The notes under the pieces were generated by a model. That model was not told the DNA's origin and ran no database searches. It was given only the letters and a program-made list of their open reading frames with translations. From NCBI GenBank assembly GCA_020891255.1, contig BQFW01000015.1:496001-560000 (forward strand): a stretch of DNA of 64,000 nucleotides, written 5' to 3'. Positions 9,780 through 38,757 of this stretch are shown one piece after another. This DNA comes from Entomortierella parvispora E1425. Taxonomy: Eukaryota > Fungi > Mortierellomycota. The position numbers and the translations under genes were made by a program. How positions within the stretch are numbered: the stretch's first letter is position 1; the number at the start of each line of letters is the position of its first letter.

Positions 9780-10338
9780 AATCGCCAATAAATCTGCCAC
9801 GTGACTGAGACAGGCGCGTTGCATTGTCCATTCCATCCGCTGCCCCATCCATCCTTGTCCCTCACCTTGTGCCATCAGGTTGAAGCATCCTGATTATTAT
9901 CACGTTCTTGTAGGTTATTCGTCTCACCTCTCGTGTATCTTTCATTTCATCGCTCTTGTTACTTCACTCCGTCTTGATATTATACGCGGGTTGACAACTA
10001 TTATCGTTGTCCGTGTTGTGGCAGTCGTGGTTCCATATCATGCGAATTGGGTGCTGATGTCTTTGCTCTAATTGCACTGACTCTGGACTGGCCCCATGGC
10101 CTTCCAGCCTCACCTGACGCTTCTCTGAGCCTTGCAATTCTATAAGCTCCGTTTGGCAGCTTGCACTGAGATCCTGGTAACCCGTCCATGCTCGGGCAGC
10201 GTTTCAGGGTGTGGAATGTATCTTCATTTCAATAGACATGTCATTTGATGAAAGACACCCTTCCTTCTCTGTGTTGTATTCACCATCTTCCTATATTTGT
10301 CTGCAGCACATAGACCGGTTATACCCTCACCCCTCACG

Positions 10339-11830
10339 ATGAAACTCTCAAACAAATCCACACCATCAAAAAAGAACTGCCAGAAGGAGAATACTGGAAC
10401 CCCCATCTTGGAACGCTTCCAGCACCCCTATACTTCGAAAGTTACAGGACCACTGTCAGCCTCCGCTACTCGATTTTCTGAAATTTTCAGAACCGCAACG
10501 CCTGATAAAATGACAGCGGTTGAGCAGATCTACAACCTCCCAAAAAACACTGGTATGATAAGAGCTTTATGATCTGATTTGCGCATTCCTTCCCATCGTA
10601 CTTATTCTTTCACGACTCATAGGGGCTATACCAGCTCCATTATTGCCATCATTCGAGTCGCATGAAACGGCAGAAGGGACATTCCTGGTTAGTGCATTTT
10701 GCACGTATATCAACGCGTTTGCGAGTTGTACTCCCCGAAATTCTCTCGTGGAACTGCAGATTCTGATGAGCTAGACGACCCCTTTAGTCCTAGTAATGAG
10801 GACAATGCTCAAACGCCAAACATGTCATCTTTATCCTCTTGACACAAAGGCAGCAAACCAGTAACACAAAAGACTGATGATGTCTCTGACTTAGACACGC
10901 TCACTGAATGACCACTTGCGAACAGTGTACTGATGACAGAAAGAAGTCACTTCAATGGCGTTACACCGACCTCGGAAGGAAATGGACATTGAAGTCAGGG
11001 ACAGTGATTGAGGGTGTGCTCTTCGGCAAAGGAGGACAAATGAAAGAATTCCAGTAAGTGTGTTTTTCCATCTTTTATTTGAGGAAAGCAACTTTGACTC
11101 ACGTTGCTCTATACAGCCCAATCCACTCTTTTATACTTTATCTGAGTGATGGAGGAGCGCAACAGCTATCTACAACGGAAGACTGTTCGGAGATTTGCAG
11201 CAATCTTCAGGATGTTAGCCCTTATTCGAAGAAAGCATGGGAATACTTAGATAGCTTCGACCACGTGGAAACGCTTGAGGATCTCCAAGATTTGCTTGAC
11301 AACCGTCCTCGGTACATTGAATCCCAACTGGTTCACGAGTGATTGATGAACTGGTAGGCAATTACACGGTGTTGTGGCTCGTGCTTAGATTTTGTGTCTT
11401 GTGACCATTGCTTATTTTTTTAGCCACCTTTCTAGGCTCTATATGTTCGAAACACACGATCCTTCACCACTCAATATTGCTGGTAGTTTGTCAGAGAATT
11501 GGCGACTGAAATCCTCCTGGTGTGTATGCACCAACCTCGCGAAAGGAGTACCAGGATGTTTCATTTTACCAGGAGATGTCACAGGCCATGATTCTTCAGC
11601 AGAAAGGAACCATGACAGGGAGTCTACATGTGGACTTGAGAGAAAGGGACTGGGACTTAGCGCCGATTTAGTGAGGAGAACGATCACGTCACCAGACTGA
11701 CTGGGCAGTTGCGGAAGCTGCCAAGATTTGGTGCCCACAGAGCAAGGAATAAACCTCAGAAAGCAAGTTAAAAAGTACCGCGTCAACTGTACGATATTAT
11801 AGTTGGCCGAACTGTAGAAGTTGATGGACC
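10339..11830 (+). pseudogene. Decayed member of the PD-(D/E)xK nuclease-like family
   Basis: Segment SENWRLKSSWCVCTNLAKGVPGCFILPGDVTGHDSSAERNHDRESTCGLERKGLGLSADLV aligns by eye with SEHVFVSVWTWILNILFVGTRLRVIPGELISKSS...SGRKVDMS of the 35-38 kb gene. After a frameshift it continues as DWAVAEAAKIW. Many stops; boundaries approximate. Confidence 0.5.
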
Positions 11831-12319
11831 AAGCGAACTACGCGATGTTTTGGTATTAAAGGATTAATCATTTTAGGAAAAGCGGGGGAGGGGGGGTCTT
11901 CCTGTTTCCCTGTTCTTTTTCTTTTTGCTTTTAACCTCCACTGTTGTGCGTGTTTTAGGGCCAATTATCCAACGGAAGGCTCTCTTTTGGGGGGGGGGGG
12001 GCAATATGGCGACAACGTCATACGGTTCATCAAAATGGAGTCGACTGTGCTTGAAGCTAGGATCAGCCACATGTAAGTTTCTTTGCATGCTATCCACGAG
12101 CTGCTTTGCTTCAGGGTACGCGAGACGCAAATAGTGGTTTGTTATTTATGTAATTTATGAACGCTACTCTAATGGTGTTGCGTAAACATAGATTTTGACA
12201 ATTCAACTGATATCTCATTACGTAGAGGCCGCCAAAAGTGATGCTAGGCTAAGTCCAGACACCCGTAAGACAGGCAGTTTACCATACTATTGGAATGATG
12301 CTTATGTATATGGATATAT

Positions 12320-13417
12320 TTAGGCTACGCGAGTGGCCGCTACCAGAGCATCCAGAGCACTCCCGTCAGAAGCACCATTCACACCGATGACAGGGCCGGT
12401 CCAGGCAACCCCCATTCTGTTGTTGCTGTCGCGGTCTTTGATCCACACCGAGTCAGCATTGTTCAGGATGAAGGTTCTAATATCAGGGTCGCCAATGACC
12501 TGGTTGAGATAGCCCAAGTTTCGGATGAAAACGCCCTTGAATTGTTTGGCATCAAATCCACAGGCACTGGCTTGCGTCTCGCATTTGTCTACCTCGACGA
12601 GAATGCCATTTGGATTAGATAGAGCTTTGATGGCCGCCTTTGCCAAAGTCCTAGCGGTGACAAGGACGGATCCACCAAGTAAAGAGGCCTTTGAGAGTTC
12701 CACCAAGGCGCCCAAAATGACGCCTTGGTTCACAGACCAGGTTTGAAGGCCATTGTTACCGCAGGTGCCGTTGAGACCGTCGTTGATGAGATTCTGGCTA
12801 TTGATCAAGCCGCTTGTTTGGAACCACTTCCATCCACTGACTGCGATTTGCCCGTACTGACGGTTGGATGGGATTCGATTCGCTAACGCAGCAGCAACCG
12901 CGATATACAACTCATTTGCGATTGCGTCGACGTTTTTGCGGTCTTTGCTCGAGAATATTCCGCCTTTGCAAGGTGTCCCACCGCCTGTCTGCATGTCCTT
13001 GAAGATACTCTCGGCTGTTTCGAGGTATCCCTCGTCTCCTGTTGCATCATATGAGTGGATCAGTCCCAGGGCCCACCAGCCCTCGTCGTCGTAGAAGTTG
13101 TTAAGAAAGCCAGGAAACTTTTTGGGTGCATTGTTGAATGTATTTTGAATAATGTTGGAGATTCTCAGTGCAGTCGCAGCGGTGGGCTGTAGTTGGGCAA
13201 AGTCGGCGAGGGTTGTCAGGGCGTTGGCACTTTGCCACCATGCGCCATCCCACAAACCCGTTTCTTGGCTGTACCAGTTGCTGTTGAGGGCTATGATACC
13301 TGTAGATGCTTCCTGGGCGTACTGCGCTTTCGTAGCATATGCATCTGTGGGGTTGAGCAAGAGTGTGGAGACCGTAGAGACCACTGAGAGTGCTAGGATA
13401 GTGAAACGTCTGGTCAT
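12320..13417 (-). CDS. Secreted glycoside hydrolase family 76 (alpha-1,6-mannanase-like), intronless
   Basis: Hydrophobic signal peptide from the ATG at 13417. Motifs WWQSANALT, catalytic YDDEGWWAL, ANELY, NLINDGL, WSVNQGVILGAL and QFKGVFIRNL. No Ser/Thr-rich or GPI tail. Confidence 0.9.
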   Translation of the reverse strand: MTRRFTILALSVVSTVSTLLLNPTDAYATKAQYAQEASTGIIALNSNWYSQETGLWDGAWWQSANALTTLADFAQLQPTAATALRISNIIQNTFNNAPKKFPGFLNNFYDDEGWWALGLIHSYDATGDEGYLETAESIFKDMQTGGGTPCKGGIFSSKDRKNVDAIANELYIAVAAALANRIPSNRQYGQIAVSGWKWFQTSGLINSQNLINDGLNGTCGNNGLQTWSVNQGVILGALVELSKASLLGGSVLVTARTLAKAAIKALSNPNGILVEVDKCETQASACGFDAKQFKGVFIRNLGYLNQVIGDPDIRTFILNNADSVWIKDRDSNNRMGVAWTGPVIGVNGASDGSALDALVAATRVA

Positions 13418-15788
13418 TTCTAAAGCTAGATGGGATTGATAACTATGCAAAAAAGTGAACGACTGGGGGTTTATATGAAAGATGTGTCTCTAAAAAGTAT
13501 GAGATCTCCTGTTGCTCTGGATCTTCTCCGTGTTTTTTTTTTTTTTTTTTTTTTTCAACCGCCTCCTGTCCTCTGCCCTGGTGCCCGCTGCTTTTTGACT
13601 CTCCTAGCCCATCGCAAAGGGTATTGTCGTAACGAGAAGTACAAGGAGAATATCGAGAAAAGCGTGAGGGGCCAATTGCATCTCTGCGGTACTGGGCGTG
13701 GGTCTTAAATCCTGGGTGATCGGGAGGCGCATCGAATACAGAAAAGTCAAGGCGAAAGATCGCGGGATCTATTTGCTTTGTTTATGTAATGAAACGGAAG
13801 AAAAAACATATTTACAATCAAGGGACAATAGTGGGCAAGGGACACCATCAAGGGATAAAAAAAAATGTATGGTAGCCAAGCGATCATAACGACAACGTAT
13901 GTTTATTTCTTTAGTGTTCATTCTCGTAATCGCTGCCAAGTGTCGTTGAGGCAAGTATTTCTAGAAGGTCATCGGCGAGGAAAGCGAGGACGGGGAGGCA
14001 AGGACAGCTAAAATCATGAGAACAGGAATAAAAAGACAGGGAGATAACAGTCAAACAAACAGACAACACCGAGAATACCTCTGGAAAAAAAAGGGGGGGG
14101 AGGGATGCAGTGGTAGCCAAGGGCGCCGACTTTGAAAAAAAAAAAAAAAAAAACGGGGAAAGAGAAAAAAGGGAAAAGGGATGCCAAGCAAAAAGTAAAG
14201 CCCGTCTCTACCTTCTCCGTGAATGTAAACACTCGCGAATTCGTCCATCTTTCCATTGTCAACAGCCACTACCCGATCAATTGACCTATTGCAAGCACAA
14301 TCTCAAAAGCCAACGCAAAAACAATCTCACTACCAGAGCCACCACTAGATCAACCGTCAAGACGCCGTGGCAAGATCTTCCACCTCCAATTCTCCATCAA
14401 GATCACTCACTGAGACTTCTACAAGAAATCCTGCATATCCCCGCTCCCTCTCAAAAAAAAAAATACAGGAAATGATTTTCTTTCCTTTGTCGTTTCTTCT
14501 TTAACCACTGTGCAAAGTCTTCAGTTGAGAGTGAATGTTGTTGCCAGTGGAGCAGCTGTTTGCCTAGGCAACTTCAATTTGGCAGATCTGGAACCATCAA
14601 ACTATGTGCTCAAGCAAGGTGGAACTCAAAACCTTTTACCGGACCATGCTATTCGTGCTGACGCCGACTCTGTATGTGCCAAGAAAGTTCCCGGAGCATA
14701 GTCAGCGAACGGTTGCACAGATATCATCAACAAACCACCACCACCCTGCCATTCTCCAGCCGCGGATCGACTCCCACAATTTCCTTATGCCATAAAGCCT
14801 AGTCTCAATTTATAATGAGATCTCGCTCGAGCCGTCGATGACAGGTGCGGGATCAGCCTCCTTGTTCCCGCTATTTGTGCTCAGAACTTTACTTCACACT
14901 GTTCGAAACATCTTTTCATATTTTCATGGATGGGAGTTCTTTTATTTTTTCTGAAAGAATGAGTTCCGGGATATGTACAGATAGACGCATTGTAAGAAAG
15001 GCTCTCCAACCAAGGAACAAGGCTGCCACCTTTTATCAATTTTCCCTTTGTGGATTCGCGCCATTGCCTAGGAATCTCAATCAGAATCTTCCTCCTCATC
15101 ATGATCTTCGACAACGTTGAGATCGTCCTCAGTGTCCTCTACATACTTTGGCTTGTTGCGCTTGTGAGGAGTAAAAGCTGCCAAAGGCTCGTTGTATCGG
15201 GGAGGTGGCGTCGATGGCAGTCGTCGGATCAAAGACAGGGTTTCCTGCACATGAACAGCATATCGCAAGATGTGGTCCTAAACAAAATAATCGACGGTCA
15301 GTGAGAATGCCTGTAGTCATATACTCTCTGTATCAACAGATTTACAGCTCGTTGACTTACCGCAAACCTCAACAGAATCTGGATTGAATCTGACTTCAGA
15401 AATTGCTTCAGTTGCACCATATCGGAAGGTATCCAGACCACACTACGAGTGGATTTCCCAGCGGCGATGATGCTCCCGCTCCGCTTCAAGGTATAGAAGC
15501 TCAGGCAGAATCCCCTTCCTTCCGCGATGATCGGAAAATACTTGCAGGTATCCACTCCTTTGTACTCCAGATCGTGCAAAACTGCGCTATTGACACGAAC
15601 TGACTTCAGGTGCTGCATCAGGCATATCGAATCCGACGCTGTGCACGTTTCGAACTCGAAAAGGCATATCTCATTATCCCAAGTGCCATTGGCAAAGACA
15701 TGAACGCCAGTATCCACCTTTCGGCCTCTCATATTTTTTATCGTTACACCGTACTTCGCCTCCACATGCAACCGGACAACCTTAGAAT

Positions 15789-16225
15789 AGCCTGTCTCCT
15801 TTCTTGTGTGCCCAAGAGAAACATTTTTTGATTAGCCTCGTTCACTTCTTGCGCGCTTTCGTTTTCTCGTTTTCGTTTTCTCTTTTTAAGGGGTGTCTTT
15901 GGGGTTTGTACGACTTTTGTGCAACCTTCGTGATGGATGATGTGTTGGCGAAAGGCGATTTTGAGCAAGGAAAGCGACGTCGAGTCGCTTTTCAGTGAGG
16001 AAATCGTTTTCAATGGTCGCACGAAAGTCGCACAAAGACCTTAAAAAGAGAAAACGAAAACAAGAAAACGAAAGCGCGCAAGAAGTGAACGAGGCTATTC
16101 TCTCTGGAAATCAACTTTTTTCTGCTTTCCAGCGAGAATCAAGTTACACAAAAACGGAAGAAGGGCCAAGCAACTCAAAGAATCAAAAAAGTGATTCTCT
16201 TGGCCTCGAAGAAAGGAGGCAGGCT
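15789..16225. mobile_element. Outer MITE (437 bp including the inner MITE)
   Basis: 17-bp terminal inverted repeats AGCCTGTCTCCTTTCTT / AAGAAAGGAGGCAGGCT with one mismatch. Flanked on both sides by AAT (15786-15788 and 16226-16228). Inserted in a coding exon. Confidence 0.8.
15834..16096. mobile_element. Inner nested MITE (263 bp)
   Basis: ~58-bp near-perfect inverted repeats starting AGCCTCGTTCACTTCTTGCGCG (15834-15891 vs 16039-16096). Flanked by ATT on both sides (15831-15833 and 16097-16099). Confidence 0.85.
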
Positions 16226-18226
16226 AATATCTTGGGAAGCAAGTTCGCCACTAGATCAATCAGTTAGAGTAGATAGTGTCAGTACAAGCAACGTCAATGC
16301 GGTTTCTAGGCTGCATAGTAGGCATGGCGCACTAAAGCTTACGGTATGCCGCCCACCATTTGACATCCTAGCAGCACCCCCAAAATGAAAGACCAGACTG
16401 AAACAACGACATGCTCCGTTGTCGGTGGGGCGAGCTGGTTCGTTGAAATGAGAGTACATATGTGGTCGATGACCTGCAGCACTTGAATTTTTCTTCTCAC
16501 GATCCTGGTCTTGGGTGAGGTGGCCCTGTTTTCCATAGGCAGGCCCCAAATCCTCATTCGCAAAGACTTCATATCCAATGGAGCGAGGGGGTCCTCCTCG
16601 TGGTCAGGGGAATACGTCTCTGCTAATTCATTCATCAGTCCAGCGATATCCTCGTCTTCTTCATGCAGCGCTGTCACTAGCGCGTCAACCTTTATAGCTG
16701 GAGTAGATGTGAAGGACCGTGTGGACGGCGAAATTGTATTTACAACGCCGCTTAAGGCCACCCTTCAACCCAGCGAAGCAAGCAGGGTATGGTTAGGAGA
16801 GACTCTCATGTATGTGATCTTAGAATTCGCAGATTTTTCAACTTACAAGACACCCTTATCCACATGGTATGGTTGCGTATGGGCCTTCTTCACCTGAACT
16901 ATGCCCTTCTTCCCCTTGCCTTTGCTCATCTTCATCTTGACTTTGTCCTTCTCATCCATGGCAAGCAATTTATCGTATGAGTACTGGTAAAGTTCCTGAT
17001 ATTCTTGGCATGTGAAAGCAGAGGGGACTGGGGGTAACTCTGCATCTTCACCTTTCATCCTTCGGTACATGTACTTCAGCAGGGGCTGAAAAGGGGAATC
17101 CGCGGAAGCAATCGCTTCCTCCAGCTCTTGTAATTCCTCTAAAACTGTCGCTGTCCAGTTAAAAAACTGCGACATATGACTTGTATCTGGCATACTCTCC
17201 TTTGATGTGCATACCTTCATCAGCAATGGGCTCATCGTGCACGGCATGGCTCTCGAAGTCCGAGTCATCATTGATGTTCAATCCACACGGGGCCGTACCA
17301 TCACCCTCGACATTATCCACGCCCTGTGAACTCTCGGTAGCTTTAGGACACTGAACATTCTCATGATCGACTTTTGAGTTATGCAGACCCTTCTTAACCC
17401 CGGATGGACCGCCCTGCTCCGCAAATGAGTCAACATCCTCCGTGAATGGATCGTTCTCTGTGGATGAATGACTAAGTGGGTTCTAATAACAACAGGAGAT
17501 ACACGGAGAATACTTAGAAAATCAACGACATCTTCTCCACCTTTCGGCACTACACAACTTGCCTTGTTCTGGAAAGTAAACCATGTCCGCGATGACCTCG
17601 ACGTATCGGCGGATAAAATCTAATCCAAAGACAGAAACAAACGAGATGAGAAAATAGTTGTAGCTGACTGGTAAAGTTTTGAGCAAGAAAAACTAGCTAT
17701 ACCTTGCACCCGACTGGCGACAGCTTGGGTGAGAGAGTGGGAAATGTCTTGAGTTTGTTTTATCGTATCTTGTAGGATGTGGCCGATGTGATCATCCTAG
17801 AAGCAAAAAAGATCCAAGTTAATGCTGAAACAGCTTCTTATACAAATCTTCGTAACATCGGAGGCACTTACGAGCTGCGCGGCCTTTTCTTCTTGCAGTT
17901 TCTTTTCACTCCAATATTTTCTTTGTGTGCGTTTTGACGTCTCCCAATGGTTGACAAGACGCCTGTGCTGGGTTGGGTTTTCTTTCAGGACACGAGGTAG
18001 AACGAGCGATTTCCACTGAAAGGATGCTTCTAACATTTCGTCCGAGGAGAACTTGCAGAAGTCGAAGAATCCAAATAGATCATATTGCTCGAACATATGT
18101 TGCTCCATATACAGCTCTCTCGGAAGACGAGTCATTATTGCGCTATATGCAATTTTTGGAATGCAGACAAATAAAGTCAATAGCACAACAAACCATCAGT
18201 ATAATACGACGTCTCGCCAGACCGTG

Positions 18227-18685
18227 CTGAAACCAGGAATAACGCTCCCTAACCAGCAGCTCTACCAGCTGTATATCATTAGCCAAAGGTCGGGGAAGGC
18301 TCTGAATATACAAAGGTAGTGGCACAACGTAGCCAAGACTGGAAAAGTAACTCAATCAGGGCGTCCTCAACCCCCCCGACCAACCCGGTGGAAGCGCATT
18401 GATCACAATGCTTGACCAAATGCCTGTGTCAACGGCCGCGTCAGCAACACGAATCTGTTCGGGAAACACTGAAGCCAGGAATAACGCCCCCAAACCAGCA
18501 GCTCTACCAGCTGTACATCCTTAGCCAAAGGTCAGGGAAGGCTCTGAATATACAAAGGTAGTGGCACAATGTAACCAAGACTGGAAAGGTGACTTAATCA
18601 GGGGATCCTCAAACCCCCCGACCAAACCGGCGGAAGCGCATTAATCACAATGCTTGACCAAATGCCTGTGTCAATGGCCGCGTCA
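18227..18685. repeat. Tandem duplication, 242-bp period, ~1.9 copies
   Basis: Unit starting CTGAAACCAGGAATAACGC at 18227 recurs at 18469 with scattered substitutions. Confidence 0.95.
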
Positions 18686-19338
18686 CAATGTTCCTCTACG
18701 AGCCGCTGTGGAGTCTTGTCAAATGGTGCGTAGGCGCCTTACCTATTCCTATTCCATGGCTTGATGAAGAGGAACGCGCGTTGATGGACGGACTTGTGCG
18801 ACAAAGTCGTGAGCAGGACAATCCACGCCCTAATTACGTCACCGGAATGGTGCGATCGCTCTTGCACCACTCTGAACAGACCCAGCCTCGCACACTGAGC
18901 GCACTCTTCACTCCTTCTCCTCCGCATCCTTCACTCTCTTTCTCTCATTCTCTCTCATTCTCTCCTCATATATTGTGTGCAGGTGTGTGCCCGTGTGTTT
19001 GCTGCATGACGGCATGACGGCATGAATCACAGACGGATGGGTCCCATGCAGGACACTGGACGTCTGATTGGACTGACCCTGAGGCGCAGCCTTGTCGAAT
19101 GCCAATCGGATTCCCTGGCCATGGACACGGACTGATCAACTGGACTGGATGATCTGAAAGGACCACAAGACCCTGAACTGACCCTCTTCTTTTTCTGACC
19201 ACCGCTCCATGCTCACCCCCCATCCGTAGCTGCAAGAAATAGCTGTCTACAGACCTCCTATACTCCACTCAAACCTCCCTCAGCCTTCCACCGCTCGACC
19301 CTCTTCCGTTCATTTCTGCAAAGTGCGCGTCATGCAAC

Positions 19339-26644: not shown

Positions 26645-27299
26645 AATTTGTAATTTGTTTTAGCGCTTTTTGCTACTGAGCCGCGAGCTCCATCCCTTCT
26701 TTTTTTTTTTGTAGTTTATCATCATAATTCAGAGCCCATAATATCGTGTGTTGAAATAAAGCGGGTCAGGAACCAGAAACAAAAAAAACACAAAATATAT
26801 CACGCTCCCCACATCCCTCTCCATCTTTTTCTCTGCAATGTCCATGGATAAACGCACCTCAAAAGCCAGAAAAAAAGAGCGACTGGGTATTAAGAGAAAG
26901 AAAGAGAGAAAAAAAAAGACAAAGGAGGTTGAAAATGCGAAAACTTGACTGCAACACTGCCAGTGCTACAGACATATAAAGCCGTTCATTTGAGAGAAGC
27001 AGAAGAAGAAGCAGGAGAAGAAGCAGAACCGCACTCGCACTATGGACTATATCTCTCTATACTTCTGACCTCCATCCGCCCACCCATCCACCCGCTCACC
27101 CCAACTCACCCCACCCACTCCCACCTCATCTCGCTGTAATTCGTGCAAGTTTTTTATGAGTGAACAGATTTGTGTAAGGGACCCCCGTGTGAAGGATCCT
27201 TATTTGTGTGAAATCCATTATTTAAGTTGTTCTCAGCAAAAAAAAAAAAAAAAAAAAATCGCGTCTCTCCTACTCCTCCTACTCCTCCTTGTCAATCGC

Positions 27300-28200
27300 G
27301 TTGCCCAGCACCGCTCATAGCTGCATCCAAATCTTTGGGAGACCTGTCGAAGCTCCTCTTAAGACAATCATCGTCTAGGTGGAAATGGTATGTTGTGGTG
27401 AACTCATTGCCTCATTGTCCATTGTCTTCCAAACTATCCGCTGTCCTCCGCGGTCAATTCTCTTTTTGCATCCTCGACAAGAAGGGGGTAAACCACTGAG
27501 AGCGACTGGACGTAATGAGAACCCGAATAGATAACGAGTGCGTCGCGCCTGCTTCGTGTAGGGACAGCTTCGGCAGTGGCTCTCGAAGATGGACAGAGCA
27601 TTTGATGGTTACAGCAGGCCCTGTCGATGTCCTAACAGGATATGTTATCATGTTAATTGGTGGTTTAATCTTCGGATGCTTCAATGCGGACATAGGGATA
27701 TTCTAATACCTCTTTCTTCGACAGGATCGCCAGTTTTTCTTCAACGCGCTTATCGATAGTCTTCTCCAGATTTTCTTCAAAACGCTCGTCCATAATATTC
27801 TCGATAGACTTCACAGCACTTCACAGCATTGAGGAAAGTAAGGAAACTGCCGCTAAGGATGGCTGATGTGCGTTCCTGTTGGCACAGGGGCACAGGATCC
27901 CTCACACAAATCTGTTTACCCGTTTTTTATTTGAACTAACAGCGCCCTTTAAGGGACTCGCAGATGTTGTTCGTAAGAACAAATCTGTAGAACAATGGGC
28001 TTAATCTCAGCAGCTCGTATCAACAAGTACACTCGTCTGCTTGCAATACCTTGTTCAATGAAAGTCATCCGCAATGGATTTATCTCTTCCAATATTTGAA
28101 ATTAACATTAGCAGGAGTTCCATAAAGCCTTTCCGGTCTGCAAGTCCAACCCAAGTAATATGATTCAGGGACAAAAGTCCTATTCGTATTCAACTAAATA
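27300..28200 (-). pseudogene. Heavily decayed gene, possibly nuclease-fold (REase/Crinkler-like)
   Basis: Stop-riddled fragments KSIENIMDERFEENLEKTIDKRVEEKLAIL and RSRRDALVIYSG...YPLLVEDAKRELTAEDSG*. The D...VE(x)xK spacing is suggestive only. Confidence 0.3.
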
Positions 28201-28629
28201 TCGGGAAAGGCGGTATCGTCGCGCTCTTGCACGGATTCTGACTTTGAGGCGCTGATAGCTTCGGGCCATCGCCTACTCAGGCAGACCCAAATACTGTAAA
28301 GTATTCCTCTCCCATTATAAATACTAACTTTTCATCAGTAAGGTGAAACTAACCTGTCTCTCTTCTGCTTCAGTATGATAGGAAGAGTCGACATCGAAGG
28401 ATCAAAAAGCAACGTCGCTATGAGCGATGGGCTGCTACAAGCCGTAAACCAGTTGTATGTATATAAACAGCACCCAGATTTTTTCGACACTCTTCCCCTT
28501 TTTCTCGCCCTGCAGTCATCCAACCCCGTCTTTTGTTTGTCGTCCCTCCTCCCCCCACTTTTTTTTTTCTGCGTACTCATCTTTTTTTGGAATCCTTCTC
28601 TTTTTTTCTACATCTTTCGTTTAAGTGTT

Positions 28630-28760
28630 ATCGCTCTTCCTTGCCCTTGCTCTTCCTTGCCCTTGCTCTTCCTTGCCCTTGCTTTTCCTTCTCCTTGCTC
28701 TTCCTTGCCCTTGCTCTTCTTGCCCTTGCTCTTCTTGCCCTTGCTCTTCCCTGCCCGTGC
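28630..28760. repeat. Pyrimidine-rich degenerate tandem repeat (CCCTTGCTCTT-type units)
   Basis: Repeated ccttgctctt / cttgcccttg motifs. They generate the KSKGK-repeat antisense ORF. Confidence 0.8.
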
Positions 28761-29515
28761 TGTTTGCTGCCATCGCTCTACTATCTTCTCCTCCCTTACT
28801 TTTCCCTTCCTCTTCGTTTGCCTGCCGTGCCCCTCTTTTTCCTGGCCTTGATTTCCCATATTTTCTTCAGCATAGTGATCATTCCCTCATCCTATTCGCC
28901 TCTTTTGAGTAGTCGTCATTAAATGAATACAATACAGTGTTAGGTGGAAAGAAGCTATTGTTTTCATTATGAGATGAAGGTTAGGCGTAGATAAATCGAT
29001 GACGGGATTTAACGAATAAAAAAAAACAAACTCGACAAGTAGCGGTGGTAGGCAAGTGATGGTGGCGATCCTGATCCATCCATCTCGATCTTTTACTATG
29101 TCTCCTTCCTTTTTTTTCTGCATCTTCATTTTTTTTTTTTTTTTTTTGGCAACCCTTTTTTTTATGCATCCTCCGTGCCCTTGCCTTTCCATTCCTATTC
29201 CTTTTTGCTCTTGCTCTTCCTGGCCTGACTTTTTTTCCCTTGCCCCACGCCTAGCTTCCATGAATCTTTTAATGTCATTGTTACTACACCCATTCACATG
29301 ATGGAACCGGGATCAAAAGCATTTTGTTTCCTATAAAAGAGCGTAAAAACCAAGTTTCTAATCTCAAATTATCACATTCCCTTCCTCAAACCCACACTGT
29401 AAGCATCCATCCCAAGAATTGTCGGCATTTTACACAGCTTCTATTTTGGACAGCAGAACTGCACTCTGTGAACTGTATACTGACACTTGACTTTGCATTG
29501 ATAATATTAGGCACT

Positions 29516-30082
29516 ATGAGAGATTTGCTGTTGTTCACAGTGTTAGTCCTTACCATGGGTCTCAACGTAGTCCTGGCGGCATGTGGACCATTTCCGTACA
29601 TAACCAATAAGATTGCCACTAACTGCGTAGTCCTGGGGAACAGCTGTAAAGACCACAACGATTGCACAAACAATACGTTGTGCGATTTCCTCAACCTTGT
29701 GGGGGGGAAGAAAGCGGAGTCTTCCGAGATTCAGGAAACAGACGTCTTATGTGAAAATAACGTCTGCGTTTATCGATTTTCTCAAAATCGTGGGGAGGAC
29801 TGCAACTGTGCACTGAGATGCGGTAATGGTCGTGAATGCAAGAACAACAAGTGTACTGACGTGGTGCACAAGGAGGAGCCATGTGGCAAATGTGATCAAG
29901 CCCCCATCAATGGAAGATGTTGTGGCCGCGGCATTGTGGACGGCAGAACCAATACCTGTTACTGCGGGACGAAGAAGATAGGGTGTAATGGAGAAAAATG
30001 TGTGTATCCTTTTCTATGCTGCCCACAGAATGGCAAGTGCTATAAGAAAGGAGAAGCCTGGAATGACTGCCCAAATCAGTAG
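29516..30082 (+). CDS. Small secreted cysteine-rich protein (188 aa, 24 Cys), intronless
   Basis: Signal-peptide-like MRDLLLFTVLVLTMGLNVVLAA. 24 Cys in the mature part, including CC and CxC pairs. Confidence 0.75.
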   Translation: MRDLLLFTVLVLTMGLNVVLAACGPFPYITNKIATNCVVLGNSCKDHNDCTNNTLCDFLNLVGGKKAESSEIQETDVLCENNVCVYRFSQNRGEDCNCALRCGNGRECKNNKCTDVVHKEEPCGKCDQAPINGRCCGRGIVDGRTNTCYCGTKKIGCNGEKCVYPFLCCPQNGKCYKKGEAWNDCPNQ

Positions 30083-30394
30083 CACTGTCAAATGCCGCTC
30101 ATACTTCAGTTACAGAAACGAGCTGAATATATATTAGCCAGAGCTTCTTGACGATTTTTTCATACACTCAGCAGTACTACACCAAGTTCTATTCCCACTG
30201 CATACGTGAAAAACTAACAATAAAGGCAAGGCTTTTTTCCCAACAGCCACAGCGCGTATCAATAGATTATTCTTTTCCCTCCGAGGGACTCTATCTTTTT
30301 TTTGTTTGAATCAATTTACTGCGTCGAGTGTGTATAAAAAACCAAGTTTGACCCAACACCTCCAGGGTCCTCGATATACAGCCACAGTCTCATT

Positions 30395-31922
30395 GGCCCT
30401 ACTCAATGCTGAACCATGACAAAAGATGTAAAAATATAAAATAATTTTGGTGTTTGTTTACTTGCTTTGCCGTCGCACAAAGAAAAACAAACATGCCCCT
30501 GAAGCGTCCGTGTGCGTGTCCTTGCAAACAGACATGCACCTCAAGCGTCCGTGTGCGTGTCGGTGTGAAAGTGTGAGACTTTTTTTCAGTCAGGGTGCTT
30601 CTTCGTTCTATTCCTCCCTCCTTTCCTTGCCTGCGCAAACTCATGGCACGAAGCTTTTACTTTCAGGAGTAGAGAGTTCGCTTCTTGGCGCTTCTTGAAG
30701 CCGAACAAACTGCAGGCGAAAATGATCTGGCAAGAGCAAGAGGAGTGAATCCGCTCCTTATCGAGGATCCTTTCGACGAATTGTTTATGGAACTTGCTCT
30801 TGTGAACAGCTCTCGTTACCTTGACCGACCCATCATGTATGCCCGTAACAACCGCGACTATAACGTTCTTGACCGTCTGGAAGGCTTCCAGGATAAGAAG
30901 TGCCGTATCTTCCTACGCATGACTCGAAAAAGCTTTCTCAAACTCACATGGATGCTCTTTGAGCACGAAGTCTTTCAAAGTCCAGGCTACAACAAACAGG
31001 AACAGGCTGCCGTTCAAATCGCAATATTACTTGACCGTCTTGGCCACGATGGGTCTGGCATGTCAACGGCGAGGTTGGCAGAGACCTGGCACAGAAGCGA
31101 GGGGTCTATATATAACTACACGGAGCGAGCCATGGTCGCCATTCTCTCCCTACAGAAACGTTTTCTTTTTTGGCCAAAATCGGAAGAACGAGTGGCCCAC
31201 GCAACCTGTGGCAAAGTCGCTGGGAAAGGATTCGTTGGTTGCGTCGGGTTTGTAGATGGCACCACCATTCCATTTGAACAAAGACCAGAGGTCAAAGGGG
31301 ACTAGAGGAATTGTCAGAGAAATTCTTGCTTACTGTCTTCTCCCGTTATATGAATGATCCGGTTCCCAGAGAGGAGGACGATCATTTCTTCATTCTAAAA
31401 TTTGGAAACTTGACCGAGCAGGAATTCAAGAACACGTTTCAAACAACCAAGACTGCATTTCAAGCTCTTGTGGAGATGCTTGAGAAAAATGACCTCTTCA
31501 GAGAATACTCGGTCCGCAAAACCCTCGATCCAGCTTGGCAAGTTACGATCGCCCTGATCAAGCTTAGCAGACCCTGGGGCGGTTCTTCTCCCTTCACCGA
31601 GCTTGTCATCGATGGCCTTGCTTCGTCAACCCAAGCGAAGTACACAAATCGTGTCATTGATGCTCTCTTATCCGTTAATCTCGCGTGTATCCAATCGCCA
31701 AACGAAAAGCACAGGAAGAGTGAATCGGGATTTTTTGTAAAGTCCCAATGGAGACTACCTCAATCAAAAAGCAGTGTTGAGTTTGCCTTCGAAAGACATA
31801 CCGCCGCGTGCCATGTTCTGTTTGTCAGAGCGTCCAATCAACGCCTAATAAAAAAAGTCATGTGATATTTTTATTATTCTTGACTATTTTAATTTTTTAT
31901 GATCAGAGCTATGAGCTGGGCC
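30395..31922 (+). mobile_element. Defective PIF/Harbinger-superfamily (PHIS) DNA transposon
   Basis: ORF 30685-31305 has the Harbinger HTH region (FLRMTRKSF...QIAILLDRLGH..G....LAETW..SEGSI...TER) and the first catalytic Asp (CVGFVDGT), then stops. ORF 31311-31865 is a second degenerate N-terminal half. Imperfect TIRs GGCCCTACTCAATGCT / AGCTATGAGCTGGGCC (12/16), flanked by ATT on both sides. Confidence 0.8.
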
Positions 31923-32830
31923 ATTATAATCATAAAATAGTTCCCTGTTTAAAATGCGCTGCAACTGTTGGCGTGTCTTTATTTTGCGAGTGAACAGATA
32001 TGACTTCAGACGAACAGTTTTTCCAATGCCGTTTTTAGAGTTCCGCTCCTAAGAGCTGTGCTACTGTAGCGTCCTCACCGCAGATTTCAATTGCCCTCTT
32101 CTTATCTGTAGTAGCGATAGGTGAGATGATAGGTCGCTTCGATCTTGAAAAAAAGAAAAAAAAATGAATCGCCATCGAGTGCAAACACCGTGGCTCACTT
32201 TGATCACAAGAGGGCGATCATCTATTTTCTTCTCTTTGCGTTCCCGGGTAACTTTTTGATACTTGGCAAAGAACATTACTCCAAAGGGGAAGAAGGGATA
32301 CGAAAATACGATCTCTATCCTTCAGCTCTCACACAAATAAAGGAGGCGAAGGAAAGATGGCTAAATATACATCCAAGGAAAAGGATGGCGAACAGTCAGA
32401 CGAGCGTTTAGCGTGCAACGCTCTGTGTGGGGCTGCCACACATCCGCACACTCCATCTGCAAACACTTTAACACGTACATCCGTCGTCCCCAGTCATCAA
32501 GGGTTCTCTCAACCCCGTTTTTAACGACTCAGCGCCTCTCCCTTGTCATACGACCACCTAACGCCTTACTATAAAGGAACTCTTGACTTGTGGTCCCAAG
32601 AAAAAACGGGGCCTCTTGTCGCCTGGTTCCTTTGTCGAGTGATACTCTTCTTCTTTTTTCTTTCTCATTTCCCACATCCACCTTTTGCTCTTCACAGACC
32701 ATCTTCTGCTCATCTTACACTTTGGCACGACCCAACTGTTCCTAGTGCCCTTCCTCTTTTACTCTTCACTACAAAAAAGAAACGCAGACACCCCCCTCGT
32801 CTCCATTCCCCTTCTCCCATCAACACCAAC

Positions 32831-33184
32831 ATGAGTGCACCCAGCTTTGTCTGCCAAGAATCCTTCGCGGCCAACAACGCGACGTCTTGCCTGCGTTACA
32901 CAAAGCTCAAGAAATGTATCAAACATGGGCAAGAGAACCACCTCAACTTTCTCTGTGTCGGCGCCAACACGATTTCGATCGGGGGATCGACCGTGCCCGC
33001 ACCCTCCAATTTGACCATGACCCCGTTCATGTGCACGTTGGAGTCCTGTCCGACCGCGGCCCCTCACTCCAAGAAGAAACACAGCGGGGCAAAGAAGCAG
33101 AGCCTGCAGTCCACCTCCGTGGGCATGACTCTTCCTGGGATCTTTGTCCTGGCTCTCGTCGTCTCCCAGCTGGCGTTTTTCTGA
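32831..33184 (+). CDS. Hypothetical 117-aa protein, 6 Cys, C-terminal hydrophobic tail
   Basis: ATG after a pyrimidine-rich leader (CAACACCAACATG), C-ending codon bias, C-terminal GMTLPGIFVLALVVSQLAFF. Confidence 0.5.
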   Translation: MSAPSFVCQESFAANNATSCLRYTKLKKCIKHGQENHLNFLCVGANTISIGGSTVPAPSNLTMTPFMCTLESCPTAAPHSKKKHSGAKKQSLQSTSVGMTLPGIFVLALVVSQLAFF

Positions 33185-34040
33185 AAGAACAAAAAAAAAA
33201 CCCCCCTAAACAAACAAACATAGTCTACAAACATACAAACAAAAAAAATCAAAACTGCACACGCGAGCGATACAACAAAAAGAAAAAAAAAATCTCCCCC
33301 TGACGACCTCCTTCTTCCGCTTGTACCAATACACACACACCGTAATAAATCATGAAGGTCGGCGTGGGAGATGGATCTCTCGGGTCGATCGCATGGCGTT
33401 AAACCCCATCTTTGGCAATTTCAGGGGAGGAGGGGAGGAGGGGACAAGGGGAGAACTTCAGGAGGTGCAGTGGTGGTGATCAGGAAGTATGGAGGATGTG
33501 GCGATTATTTTTTTCCGCGCTGGCTCTTTTATCCTGCATCGTCATAGGTGGTAAGGTCGAATGGCCTGCAAGAGAAAGGGCGATGACGCGATCTATCTTA
33601 GAAGAGCCTTTGGTGCCAATGTCAAGCAGGAGAGCGTCGAAGAAAGTGTGTTGTCAAGAACGCGTTCCTATATACGCAGAAGCTTCTGCGCGAGCGGAGT
33701 GCTTGGGAAGATCGAAATCTGCTGACATGTTCGACGTGAAAAGGCGAAGTAAACACGTTTTATTCTTTAGTCGCCAATGTAGCGTTTGCTATACACAGTG
33801 GCATGTTGCAATAGACTTCTAAAAAAAGAAAAAGAGTTGCGGCTAGGGGTTCAAAGCCGCAAGCAGTAGCTGGAATGTGATATACCGGGCGAGCGCTTTG
33901 ATGGTTGTATTTTTGTTGTGCGTGTCTTCGTTTGTAAGTAGGTTATTCATCCGTGAAAGCAAAACGATGGTGGTGAGTCCACCATGCTTCAGCTTCATCA
34001 AACTTGGGATCCTTCAAGCGCGGGAGCAAAAAGGTCAATT

Positions 34041-34843
34041 CTAGATTACGAGAGATTTCAGCAGAACCAGGAGGGAAAGGGACCGGCTGGCCACCATCAA
34101 AGAGTTTGTTTCGATTTCGACATGTGATTCCAACCTCAGTCCCTGTCCACAGTTCAACAAATCCATTGACATTCTTGAGAAGTAAATCTCGTGATGTAAA
34201 ATCGCAGAAATAGTGAAGCGTGTGAAGGATGGTCCACCATTGCTGGATCCTTTTCCTTGTCCTCCCTGAGCCCCTAGTTGTCTATCCCCGCCTATCTCTG
34301 CGCTTGACTCGATTCCTTGTCTGTTTACCAGCTTTTGACTTGTCCGCTTTCATGACAAGGCCAAGGGCCAAGGATCCAAATTCCGCGAGAAACTTCGGGG
34401 GGACCCTCTCTGATGATACTGTTTCATTGGTAACAGGGTCACTTTGCCAAATGTCGGGACGCTGACTGGAGACCAGAAGATAAGTGACATTCCCGGGAGA
34501 TACGATATGAACAGCACCATTAGTCAAAACAACGTCCAGGATTACGCCCGGATAGTGCTTGATGCAGTGAGGCGTGATTCAAGAATATGACAAGAACGCT
34601 TTTGAGCTTTCGTGGACTACAACGCCCCTTCTCAGACCTTCAGGCTCACCTTCTAAGTTACCTTTTCCGATGGGCAGCCTTCATCCACATGAGCGTAATA
34701 TTGCCATTCATGACGTGTTTGACACCTGGAAAACAGTGCTCTATATCGTCCCAGTCGATAACAGACTGCCCATCAACTTGGGTGCAAAGGAGTTCTTGGA
34801 CGTTCTTGGAGCCAGCAACACGAAAGGATTGAGTCTCCTGCAT
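34041..34843 (-). pseudogene. Mortierellaceae-type N-terminal header-domain gene, truncated
   Basis: Exon 1 MQETQSFRVAGSKNVQELLCTQVDGQSVIDWDDIEHCFPGVKHVMNG joins RITPHCIKHYPGVILDVVL, a header I recall from many Mortierella proteins. The acceptor at 34580-34581 reads TG instead of AG, and stops follow at 34282 and 34041. Confidence 0.6.
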
Positions 34844-35378
34844 GACTTGTTACAAACACCTGCGGTGGATAATGTGAACAACAGTGATTGCGTGAGAAAA
34901 TGTGTGTGGGATGTGTGAAAAGAAGGAGAAAGAGGCAGTGCTGGCAGCATGGTCCTTTCAAGTCAAAAAATTGGGCTGTGCTCGCTTCGGCTTTCTTTGT
35001 GAGGCCGGCCTTGTTTGACTTGCCTCACAGCTTGGAAGTCAACACAAAGAGAATTTCAAGCAGACTGAGCTGAAGATACATACATGTGTGGGTGGTGTGC
35101 TGTGGGATTCAATTCGCAGGTTTCATAAGCTTAAGGGGTATAGCGCCCGATCGCACCAGGACGAATGAAAAGATGGATGAATGGGATTGGGAACGAGGGA
35201 TGAGAGTATGAGAGTGGGTGATGAATGAGTGAATGAGCGTGGGTGTGGTGGGTGCAGATGAGGGATGATTGAAATGAGTGTGTAACCGTTTGCATGTCTT
35301 CAGAGTAAAATTTTCCGGTATACATATCATCATAACGGTAGCCAGTAGCAAAGCATCCCAATACACTCTTTTTATTTA

Positions 35379-37989
35379 TCAGTACGTTGAATCATAGCCT
35401 TCATGCTCAAGCTCATATTCGTCCTGCTCATCTGTCTCATCTGTCTCCGTCAACGATCGACGAGGCACATTGTTTCGCTTGTCCTTACTTGCAGGTGAGA
35501 ATAGAATAATGGGTTTCGAGCGCTTGCGTGGTGGGGTGGCGGATGACATTGATGTTTGCTCTTCTTCGAAGTAGCTGTAATCGACGTCGTCGTCAAGGGG
35601 TGTGGCCTTGGACTGGGCTAAGGCATCTGTGACGTCGATAGAAAAGCGACGAAGATGCTCCTATTGTGATTTGTCAACCATCCATTCTTGAGATGCAACG
35701 AATAGTCAAGACTCGATAATTCTCGGTGAAGAAACTTACCTTGAAGGCAAACAGAGTGAGAATACTATCGGACAGAAAAAAATTCTTAAGACTTGAGACG
35801 TCAGAGGGCAAGGTGATACCCTGGGCAGTCGCTCGACCTGCCCCGAGTACATCGCCATATCGCCTCAATGTGTAGAAGTTCAAGCTGAGGCCTCTGCCTT
35901 CGGCAATTACTGGATAGTGACGAGTGACGTCCAGACCACGATCCTCAAGATCTACAAGAATGGCAGCATTCAAGCGGACGGATTTCTTCTGCTTGACATT
36001 ACAGGTATGTTGACTGGCACTGGCAGTCTTGAACTCAAACACTGCAATTTCGCTCCGCCATTCATTATCGACTTGGATCCGTAGACTCATATCCACTTTT
36101 CTTCCTGACACCGTCGATTTTGTGGATCCAAACTCAGACTCAGTAGCCTGTCGTGCATCTGCGCTCGACTTGGAAATCAACTCTCCACTAAAGGAAACAA
36201 AAATGGAGGACAGTGGTTACACTCAAGAAGCCTTTGCATGATGAAGTTAGTTCAATAAACCAAGTCCACGGATTTACACTTACGGAATGACACGAAGTCT
36301 AGTTCCTACAAATAAAATATTGAGGATCCATGTCCATACAGAAACAAACACGTGCTCCGAGGTTGGAGGAGCGAGCGATCCTTGCTCAATCGAGGCAACG
36401 ACATGCTGTACAATCAGTAGGGTGGTGTACATGGCCATACCAGACTCAGTCTGCTTCAGATCAACTGCGCGACACAGTTCTTTCCATATGGTCTTCTGCA
36501 ACTGCACAAACTGGGGTTCCGCATACGGGTCTTGTTCGAGTGTTGGGCACAATGCATCTAGTAGCCTTTTCAAGACTTCTTTGACAGATCTGTGTGTGTC
36601 TGATGCAGGGTCGACTGGTGGTAATTGCGATGAGGTCATGATAGACTTGGAGACAGTGAAACTCCGTCCGCTCGGTGCCACAGTGTTGATAATTCCAGAT
36701 AGCATGACCCTAATGAGATAAACAGGTAGCATTAGCAGGAGATATCTCAGTGATATTGCTTGCAACGCGAAAAGATAAACTTACAGTACATCCTTCTTGG
36801 CTTGGACTAGTCCAGGCTTGCGCAACTCGCATAATGCCGCCTTGTATAGTTCTTTGTGGTTCTTCGAGAGACCTTGAGGGATCAATGAGGGAAGGGTCGC
36901 AGGCTTCTTTTTGACCTAATGAGACAAAGATAAGCGTTTCAAATTTAGCTTCTGAATTGCTATTACCAGTAGTGAGCACAGGTGCTCGTTATACCTTCTG
37001 AAACACATAAGCGATCAAGTCATAGAAAGGCGTCGACATGGCACGCGAGTAAACAATCTGCGCCTCTGATATATCAACATCTACATCAACATTGCTGGGT
37101 TAGTAATGGACAGGCAAGCAGGCTCAATACAATACAGGTTGGCTCTTCAGAGTCAGAACATAACATCGCACAAACCTGTATCTGGCTCCGTAGGCGACTG
37201 TTCTGTTGGTGGATTCTTTGTTGTCTCGACAGAAGATAATGGTGAGGTGAAATTGGATGATCTGAAAGGACGGATGTTCGAAGATGTAGGTGCCAGAGGC
37301 GTGGTCGCATACTTGTCATGCACATTCTTGGCCACTCTGAATGTGTGTTCCTCATCCTGCTGGAAGGTAGTGAAAGTTGATGGCGGGAGGCTTGCTGATG
37401 AACTGGACGTAGGAGTAAAGGGTGGCCGGTTTCGGAGACTCGATGCAGCAATGCGATCCTCCTGATCAGTAGGGAATATCGACATTAGCTCAAGATAGAG
37501 GAAGTAACAAAACAAATGTGCTCAACAGAATTGCTGCTTACTTCTTGCGAGAGCAACCCTATACCGGACTCAATGAATCTTGAGCCCTGGACTACACCAG
37601 CAATTTGAAGTCGTTTGCGCTTCTTGTCAACAACCATCTCAACGCTCATCTTCTTCCGACCCTTTCCTTGCGAGAAGTAGTTCGCCGCCCACTCTTTGAA
37701 TTCATCCTCCTATGAAAAGTAAAAAAATGCTACGTGAGTTTTCATTGCGACCTCAGCAAACCAGGATCTTACAATAAACAAAAAAGAGTGGAACCTTCAG
37801 CTGGCTCATTAGCTGGGTGTAGCCTGCTCTATGCAGTGATGTATGAAGAGCGTCCAAGGCCTTGTGCTTTGTGGAAAGGTTGAATTCTTGGAAGAACCCT
37901 TGAGCTATTTGCGTGATATTCTTGCTGGCGTTCCGCAAGATGAACTCGTGCCTCTTTTTGTGTAGATCTGTCGACATGGTCTCTAACAT
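35379..37989 (-). CDS. PD-(D/E)xK nuclease-like protein, copy B, apparently intact, 8 exons (~660 aa)
   Basis: Manual splicing gives one continuous frame ending ...GRKVDMSLRIQVDNEWRSEIAVFEFK...QKKSVRLNAAIL...YPVIAEGRGLSLNFYTL..., with an acidic tail. The D-x18-E-x-K spacing fits the restriction-endonuclease fold. The first donor (GTTCCA) is weak. Confidence 0.7.
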
Positions 37990-38049
37990 GAAAAAGACAA
38001 TGTCATCTTACATGTCTATTTTCCAACATCGAACGTTTGTCATGTGACA

Positions 38050-38757
38050 GCAACCTTGCTAGCCAGCAGCTAAACTCGTTCGAATCGAGCGCAAGGAGGC
38101 AGCACCTTCATTCATTTATGAAGGTGTGCACACCATCAATGTTAGGCAAAGAACCTCTTCATGATAAGAAAAGTCATGAAATGAAGAACAATGGATCCAG
38201 CCAGCAGCTTTGAACGGGATCGCCCCGAACGCCCATCGTCCTTCAGCTCAGTGCCCCTACACCAGTTTTAACAGACAACGCTAAGCAGAAACAAATTTGT
38301 GATGGCAACCTTGCTAGCCAGCAGCTAAACTCGTTCGAATCGAGCGCAAGGAGGCAGCACCTTCATTCATTTATGAAGGTGTGCACACCATCAATGTTAG
38401 GCAAAGAACCTCTTCATGATAAGAAAAGTCATGAAATGAAGAACAATGGATCCAGCCAGCAGCTTTGAACGGGATCGCCCCGAACGCCCATCGTCCTTCA
38501 GCTCAGTGCCCCTACACCAGTTTTAACAGACAACGCTAAGCAGAAACAAATTTGTGATGGCAACCTTGCTAGCCAGCAGCTAAACTCGTTCGAATCGAGC
38601 GCAAGGAGGCAGCACCTTCATTCATTTATGAAGGTGTGCAGACCATCAATATTAGGCAACGGACCCTTTCATGACAAGAAAAGTCGTGAAATGAAGAACA
38701 ATGGATCCAGCCAGCAGCTTTGAACGGGATCGCCCCGAACGTCCATCGTCCTTCAGC
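38050..38757. repeat. Tandem array, 255-bp period, ~2.8 copies
   Basis: GCAACCTTGCTAGCCAGCAGCTAAACTC starts at 38050, 38305 and 38560. Copies 1 and 2 look identical by eye; copy 3 carries substitutions and is truncated. Confidence 0.97.

Follow-up and report, generated by a model that had tools for sequence, protein, structure and literature searches.

Predicted PD-(D/E)xK nuclease genes paired with upstream tandem arrays in Mortierellaceae: a candidate selfish or accessory DNA unit

A 64-kb stretch of the Entomortierella parvispora genome, hereafter the window (C15:496001-560000, forward strand, of a 38.9-Mb genome in 20 contigs), contains two copies, named C and B, of a lineage-specific gene family that very probably encodes nucleases of the PD-(D/E)xK fold, and each copy stands directly downstream of a tandem array. 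The reading that we favour, with some reserve, is that gene and array together form a selfish or accessory unit, which would duplicate into plastic intergenic DNA, leave copies that then decay, and now and then pass from one genus to another. The nuclease may drive the spread of its own unit in a homing-like manner or may act as a killer or defence nuclease. Because blocks carrying the family are present or absent beside core genes, because the pairing with an array is repeated and because at least one copy is too similar across genera, this unannotated and catalytically intact-looking family offers a testable case of what may be a new DNA element of early-diverging fungi, selfish or of defence type. 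If the array were the target of the nuclease, the pair would constitute a new nuclease-site system. Mortierellaceae are abundant soil and plant-associated fungi that are used for lipid production, and to our knowledge their accessory genome has hardly been explored. The PD-(D/E)xK superfamily is well known; literature searches returned no description of the present family, and the family itself, its restriction to Mortierellaceae among the named matches, its recurrent pairing with arrays and its similarity across genera all appear to be undescribed.

An earlier note, made by eye from the letters of the window, had pointed to at least three related loci, at 10.3-11.8, 15.1-18.1 and 35.4-38.0 kb, and the relationship holds for the latter two (copies B and C, Table 1). 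Both are on the minus strand and they are homologous, with 45% protein identity between their catalytic exons (E 1e-45), 31% identity between the exons that precede these (E 1e-19), five collinear segments in a tblastx comparison, and the SEH helix, IPGE, GRKVD and EF(K/E) motifs in common. The first locus, 'locus A', was rejected as a third copy, since it has no tblastx match to B or C and no profile match at E-values up to 10. Its best open reading frame (ORF) scored -3 to -4 bits against four family hidden Markov models, a score equalled or bettered by 33-55% of 2000 shuffles, and the family-like motif noted there by eye is most likely due to chance. The mixed orientation reported for the loci had rested on locus A and does not survive its removal. 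Several ORFs of 90-100 amino acids lie on the plus strand of locus A (10297-11700), without Pfam match and unrelated to the family.

Copy C can indeed be spliced into an intact protein, as the earlier note had proposed. Each of its eight exons joins the next through a frame-compatible GT-AG intron (seven introns of 75-96 nt), and in a tblastn search a 668-residue homologue from Linnemannia hyalina, P0041, was collinear with the gene from 37986 to 35391. The copy C protein was searched exon by exon, the spliced product not being joined, and P0041 and P0014, a homologue that is a natural fragment of 293 residues spanning the conserved domain, served as natural stand-ins for structure work. The ratio of nonsynonymous to synonymous substitution rates (dN/dS) between copy C and its L. 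hyalina counterpart amounts to 0.26 for the gene as a whole and to 0.12 for the catalytic exon, which indicates that the intact copies are under purifying selection; together with the conservation of the motifs, this makes it likely that they are functional.

Copy B, conversely, is a broken paralogue, whose best relative is P0029 of Lobosporangium (46-68% protein identity). The replacement of the catalytic lysine, EFK to EFE, is real and sits in this copy, not in locus A to which it had been assigned. Moreover, the catalytic exon of B is interrupted by a nested insertion, and the reading frame differs on either side of it. The insertion consists of a Stowaway-like miniature inverted-repeat transposable element (MITE) of about 180 bp, with TA flanks and a terminal inverted repeat starting GCCTGCCTCC, of which the genome holds at least 40 copies at 78-99% identity (another lies at L022, about 1502-1676). 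Inside the MITE lies a palindromic hairpin element of 276 bp (15828-16103), an inverted repeat with 90-nt arms, which has a twin of 99% identity at C10:596542-596817.

The nature of the protein was addressed by family searches and by structure prediction. A word search collected 21 relatives and an exhaustive profile search 293 cluster representatives at E <= 1e-3, and all named members among them are Mortierellaceae 'hypothetical proteins', from Linnemannia, Mortierella, Podila, Dissophora, Gamsiella, Haplosporangium, Lunasporangiospora, Lobosporangium, Benniella, Actinomortierella and Gryganskiella. Pfam scans of ten exons of the window and of fifteen homologues gave nothing relevant, and the family profile found no match among PDB sequences. 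Full-length members count 450-680 residues with the conserved domain at the C-terminus. Over 60 sequences, in P0041 numbering, the residues conserved to at least 90% are the glutamate of the SEH helix, E450, R477, K478, D480, E499, K501, Q513, K516, R519 and N521.

In the full-length model of P0041, the N-terminal part is helical and includes one long helix (residues 127-174); a disordered stretch (174-291) and a confidently predicted C-terminal domain (290-585) come next, and about 80 of the 668 residues follow the nuclease. Foldseek and VIA searches with this model were uninformative as the N-terminal helices dominated them, and therefore the natural 293-residue fragment P0014 was modelled. 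Its model, based on 123 aligned sequences, reached a predicted local distance difference test (pLDDT) score of 95.4 and a predicted template-modelling (pTM) score of 0.91. It shows the alpha-beta-beta-beta-alpha-beta core of the superfamily, its elements being helix 89-103, strands 109-117, 143-152 and 155-166, helix 172-195 and strand 206-231. The superfamily signature, an acidic residue on helix 1, an aspartate on strand 2 and (D/E)xK on strand 3, is present: the conserved glutamate lies on helix 89-103, the aspartate on strand 143-152 and ExK on strand 155-166, with the conserved Q...K on helix 172-195. Structural matches were almost exclusively PD-(D/E)xK nucleases. VIA placed BpuSI (Z 9.6, 155 aligned residues, root-mean-square deviation (rmsd) 3.6), DrdV (Z 9.1) and HsdR (Z 8.2) above a putative restriction endonuclease domain, TT1808, BsaWI, NgoMIV, Hjc, Can2, Cas4, EcoRI and SgrAI, and Foldseek ranked DrdV, SgrAI and EcoRI first with weak E-values of 0.009-0.09; a viral structure library returned only weak rows of PD-(D/E)xK type. 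This fold match, together with the nearly invariant catalytic residues, supports the restriction-endonuclease fold that the earlier note had called. The modelled protein starts with a helical part that includes a long helix, continues with a disordered linker and then has a C-terminal helical subdomain fused to the nuclease, in which the E...D...ExK...Q signature is intact, and a short basic tail. These intracellular proteins, of about 600-680 residues, may act as metal-dependent DNA endonucleases.

The best structural matches are nuclease domains at the N-terminus of Type IIG/IIL and Type I restriction enzymes (BpuSI 3s1s, DrdV 7lo5, HsdR 3h1t), which share the core and the positions of the acidic residue on the first helix, the aspartate on strand 2 and ExK on strand 3 over 130-155 aligned residues (Foldseek probability 1.00 for DrdV), and HSDR_N (Pfam) clusters are among the ESM Atlas structure matches, which we take as a lead only. 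In contrast to the restriction enzymes, to which no match at the sequence level was found, the fungal proteins carry no methyltransferase, helicase or specificity modules, are encoded by eukaryotic, intron-bearing genes and have a helical N-terminal subdomain and a disordered linker of their own. A second relative in fold may be PDDEXK_12 (PF20516), a fungal family, mostly of Ascomycota, with a predicted PD-(D/E)xK-like fold, which is the nearest Pfam-bearing cluster in the ESM Atlas (language-model features 0.77; structure TM 0.54 over 222 residues), again as a lead only. The PF20516 model itself had no match in the exons of the window or in 15 homologues at thresholds of E <= 0.1 to 10, nor in the whole genome at E <= 1, and none in 14 control genomes. 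The longest structural alignment, of 193-194 residues, was with two chains of the human mitoribosomal large subunit (7a5f_s3 and 3j7y_5, Z 9.0 and 7.8); it spans the helical subdomain and the nuclease-like core and was the sole C-terminal match of the full-length model. These chains are ribosomal structural proteins at 9% identity and rmsd 4.3-4.6, and nothing suggests a common function.

A link to Spok meiotic drivers or to Crinkler-associated nucleases had also been raised, and what remains of it is a resemblance in architecture. In SPOK proteins of Podospora, a coiled-coil and a domain at the N-terminus are followed by unstructured regions and a PD-(D/E)xK nuclease, and killing depends on the catalytic lysine of the latter (PMC6660238). 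By analogy, the present nuclease could supply the toxicity in a system of meiotic or vegetative drive whose antidote is encoded at another locus or comes from regulation, a reading that we consider highly improbable. The family resembles the killing half of SPOK proteins (PMC6660238), its genes are, like the Spok genes, multicopy, patchy and found at varying chromosomal sites, some of them decaying, and the ESM Atlas structure matches include fungal-kinase (PF17667) proteins at TM 0.43-0.51. SPOK proteins, however, belong to a different phylum and carry a cysteine cluster and a kinase domain as antidote, neither of which was found here: no kinase Pfam domain occurs in ten full-length homologues, and the protein ends shortly after the nuclease. 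Nor is a drive phenotype known, and the sexual biology of Mortierellaceae is poorly accessible. As to Crinklers, the header domain PF20147 had no match in the family proteins, whose N-terminus is predicted to be helical with low to moderate confidence. In a single case, in Linnemannia elongata AG-77, a divergently oriented gene adjoining a family member carries the Crinkler domain PF20147 (L061, 3981-4757).

Whole-genome profile searches identified at least nine loci with collinear multi-exon matches, the two copies of the window included. The paralogues are about 25-47% identical. D...ExK...Q is retained in six of the nine loci (C and those on contigs C11, C12, C1, C3 and C13), and the remaining three are broken: B, the C6 locus, which is a fragment with a stop, and the C10 locus, which has a stop inside the ExK strand. 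The decay reported from the window is thus seen in several copies, but the high copy density does not hold for the genome. To judge from the number and divergence of its members, the family is modest in size, old and diversified, with decay ongoing, and is not the product of a recent burst.

The tandem arrays are the second component of the proposed unit. The window holds two tandem arrays of period 60 or more, and each lies directly upstream of a family copy. Further arrays stand upstream of the copies on C11 (276 nt x 9.2), C10 (168 x 1.9), C1 (173 x 4.9) and C13 (138 x 1.9), so that six of the nine loci of the genome have an upstream array with a period of 138-276 bp. Other species show the same pairing, with 258 x 2 in L. 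hyalina, where the two copies of the unit are 100% alike over 204 nt, 243 x 2.8 in Mortierella alpina and 167 x 2.9 at a partial Lobosporangium copy. As background, 61 kb of unrelated loci of the same genome contained no array of period 100 or more, and arrays of period 60 or more were absent from 79 kb of housekeeping loci in relatives. Arrays of different paralogues, B and C among them, have no detectable sequence in common, units within one array are 91-100% alike, and between the two species the C arrays agree at about 82-86%, a pattern that looks like concerted evolution. Since it borders the gene's start and forms the outer edge of the unit, the array is probably a promoter or regulatory module, or one for recognition. 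No Rfam match was obtained for 34.0-39.2 kb, a range that includes the C array; RNA folding of the 255-nt unit is unremarkable (z-scores -1.6 and -1.9), and the C array contains several short palindromes. Relatives of this 255-nt unit, 75-76% identical, occur at C13:2308882-2309333 and C13:2369563-2370015 (L016-L019), 60 kb apart, with no family gene within about 1.5 kb of either.

Movement of the unit is suggested by the comparison of copy C with its counterpart in L. hyalina. A blastn alignment of the C unit with the P0041 locus (L010) gave 77% identity over 3310 nt (38502-35344), the alignment of the L. hyalina array reaches about 38789-38807, and the flanks are unrelated on both sides, the similarity stopping at both edges. 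Exons are 76-85%, introns 75-81% and the upstream array 82-86% identical, and the number of synonymous substitutions per site (dS) is 0.55. The introns (distance about 0.23) are thus more conserved than the synonymous sites. For the divergence expected, we considered housekeeping genes of the window, whose protein matches are to Mortierellaceae. The acetoacetyl-CoA synthetase has its nearest available relative in Gryganskiella cystojenkinii (90% protein identity), Linnemannia, Podila, Dissophora and Mortierella following at 83-87%. The dS of the synthetase exon is 1.0 for the comparison with Gryganskiella, 1.3 with Podila, 1.8 with Linnemannia zychae and 1.95 with Lobosporangium, that of CNOT1 exons is 1.5-2.3 with Gryganskiella, and the codon-biased RPS20 (dS 0.13) is the sole low one among the housekeeping genes compared; introns and intergenic DNA are 63-72% identical to those of Gryganskiella. 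The genes flanking the L. hyalina unit were dropped as a divergence baseline, being members of expanded or multicopy families.

The nearest family member found in Gryganskiella is only 45% identical to C, and a tree of the domain unites C with P0041 of L. hyalina and P0001 in a clade with 99% support (the row of the C11 copy, cut in the wrong frame, is disregarded). That the C unit moved between the two lineages after their split is the simplest reading of these data, which suggests transfer between genera. Other clades of the tree also unite different genera by very short branches. Proteins P0003 of Gamsiella and P0006 of Haplosporangium, for instance, are 92% identical, which exceeds the 83-87% of the synthetase between genera as measured against the present genome, a baseline from other species pairs. 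Their likeness may reflect either more cross-genus movement or contamination between low-coverage assemblies; such cross-sample contamination is possible in some of these assemblies and not in the two long-contig genomes compared for C.

A doubtful yet serious alternative is that the family is an ordinary lineage-specific host family, a DNA-repair, recombination or defence nuclease in fast-changing intergenic DNA, inherited vertically and often lost, so that the likeness to L. hyalina would result from constraint and from birth-and-death sorting of old paralogues. Purifying selection at dN/dS 0.26, the retention of catalytic residues and intron positions in old, diverged paralogues, the lack of transposon termini and the generally rearranged gene order between genera are all consistent with it. 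It accounts less well for introns and an array that are 75-86% identical to L. hyalina, as compared to 65-72% for housekeeping introns against the nearest relative, and for a dS of 0.55 where housekeeping genes give 1.0-2.3; three broken loci out of nine and the absence of both B and C from the collinear Gryganskiella sites, described below, likewise argue against it.

The genomic setting provides a further line of evidence for movement. Between 8.4 and 47.9 kb the window is collinear with a Gryganskiella contig (L012), with which it shares the order G-patch gene, CNOT1, RPS20, acetoacetyl-CoA synthetase, V-ATPase c, PMSR and alkaline phosphatase, and the RPS20 adjoining copy C encodes a protein identical to Gryganskiella RPS20. 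Within this order the window contains two blocks without a counterpart in that contig (Table 1), so that B and C are both in lineage-specific, repeat-rich blocks flanking the same core gene, CNOT1. Block 1 contains locus A, a GH76 gene (12320-13450, Pfam match) and copy B, and block 2 dispersed repeats, a cysteine-rich ORF, Harbinger-like fragments and the C unit.

Table 1. Coordinates of the nuclease gene copies, their arrays and the blocks that hold them (positions in the window)
Feature	Position	Strand	Description
Copy C	35391..37989	-	Apparently intact 8-exon gene, ~677 codons, ATG 37989, stop near 35391
C exons 1-4	37989-37773 (alternative end 37795), 37693-37542, 37461-37172, 37094-36995	-	Approximate
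C exons 5-8	36915-36785, 36709-36284, 36187-35740, 35660-35391	-	Approximate
C catalytic exon	35740..36187	-	GRKVD, EFK and QKKS helix, the PD-(D/E)xK core
C array	38043..38807		255 nt x 2.8, edge 54 nt upstream of C ATG; outer 5' part of the unit
Conserved unit	35344..38807	-	Array, gene and ~45 nt of 3' flank, common to L. hyalina
Copy B	~15080..18186	-	Broken paralogue; EFK to EFE; catalytic exon interrupted
Nested insertion in B catalytic exon	15786..16229		MITE and hairpin element
B array	18227..18685		Tandem Repeats Finder (TRF), 242 nt x 1.9, ~100 nt upstream of likely start of B
Family loci	Two in the window (B, C) and one each on C11, C6, C10, C12, C1, C3, C13		Profile matches
Locus A	10339..11800	+	No detectable family membership
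Block 1	9296..19321		10 kb between G-patch gene and CNOT1, ~1 kb in Gryganskiella
Block 2	26647..39026		12.4 kb between CNOT1 and RPS20, ~0.3 kb in Gryganskiella

These blocks raise another explanation, which we regard as distinctly unlikely, namely that each block of 10-12 kb is a composite or large mobile element, or a hot spot filled by other transposons (Harbinger-like, Stowaway-like MITEs), the nuclease gene being cargo that takes no part in moving itself. Block 2 does hold dispersed repeats as well as Harbinger-like fragments with copies on C2 at 100% and 95% identity, copy B was struck by its abundant MITE, and the L. hyalina copy also has neighbours from expanded or multicopy families. 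The statement of the earlier note that no transposase or reverse transcriptase is recognisable is valid inside the conserved unit, and does not extend to the blocks, where Harbinger-like transposase remnants and MITEs occur. The similarity to L. hyalina is, however, confined to the 3.4-kb unit of array plus gene and sharp at both of its edges, no neighbour is common to six family loci examined in other species, and no terminal repeats at the level of the blocks were seen in a search that was not exhaustive.

To return to the reading of gene and array as a selfish or accessory unit, the suspicion of the earlier note that the gene is selfish or mobile receives real support from the blocks absent from Gryganskiella, from a C unit far less diverged than housekeeping genes and from the decay of several copies, and is at odds with the purifying selection and the age of the family. 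Several points weigh against it. Paralogues that are old (25-47% identical) and under purifying selection are what an ordinary host family would show. The C unit lacks the terminal inverted repeats, target-site duplication and transposase of a class II DNA transposon: none of these was found at the unit ends, the unit has a single ORF and no terminal repeats were found between arrays and 3' ends, and therefore no known mechanism would account for its movement. The empty-site comparison rests on one collinear relative, Gryganskiella, so that an insertion here and a deletion there are indistinguishable, and since the blocks are mosaics of 10-12 kb, much larger than the gene, an insertion of the gene unit itself is not shown. 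Linnemannia, Podila and Lobosporangium do not preserve the order of genes near the synthetase, and with gene order thus rearranged between genera, little can be concluded from the L. hyalina copy lying at a non-syntenic site. For Linnemannia, the expected divergence was taken from L. zychae, a congener of L. hyalina. Arrays are missing before the C6, C12 and C3 loci and before three foreign loci (L006, L061 and L062). Finally, the fold-search scores behind the predicted endonuclease are moderate (best Z 9.6, Foldseek E of 0.009 or more).

A more far-reaching version of the favoured reading, which we hold to be unlikely, is that gene and array make up a self-contained mobile unit without a transposase, of a kind new to fungal nuclear genomes. 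In that case the array would be the site at which its own nuclease binds, cuts or starts copying, co-evolving with each paralogue, and the unit would be copied within genomes by break and repair, in a homing-like way, and would also pass horizontally among genera of Mortierellaceae.

A few further observations concern the surroundings of the two units. In L. hyalina, the unit is flanked by a gene of 323 amino acids that has five equal-score matches in the E. parvispora genome (C1:388342, C5:1180413, C9:345364, C13:1654303 and C13:2318704), each an open frame of 333 amino acids with 42% identity; these five frames probably represent a recently active mobile element. An ARM-plus-kinase gene that also adjoins the L. 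hyalina unit has a very large family of relatives in this genome, about 40 loci with open frames mostly of about 1,300-1,900 amino acids and 28-40% identity (for example C13:2055622 and C2:511374). In block 2, the Harbinger-like DNA (30394-31923) contains two ORFs (30685-31305 and 31311-31865) that by eye resemble N-terminal parts of a Harbinger/PIF-type transposase and have no Pfam match; it is 100% identical to C2:2237810-2238719 and 95% to C2:2232669-2233301, and the Harbinger-like fragments are therefore recent copies. The same block carries a cysteine-rich ORF of 252 amino acids (29324-30082, plus strand) with a hydrophobic segment and no Pfam match. Its dispersed repeats (27005-28857) are 76-94% identical to many sites, including the very start of C11, and recur at regular spacing on the small contigs C16 and C18. 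Their 81-nt core (28363-28443) is 94% conserved, and a 59-nt piece of these repeats is present in L. hyalina (L010, 23947-24005).

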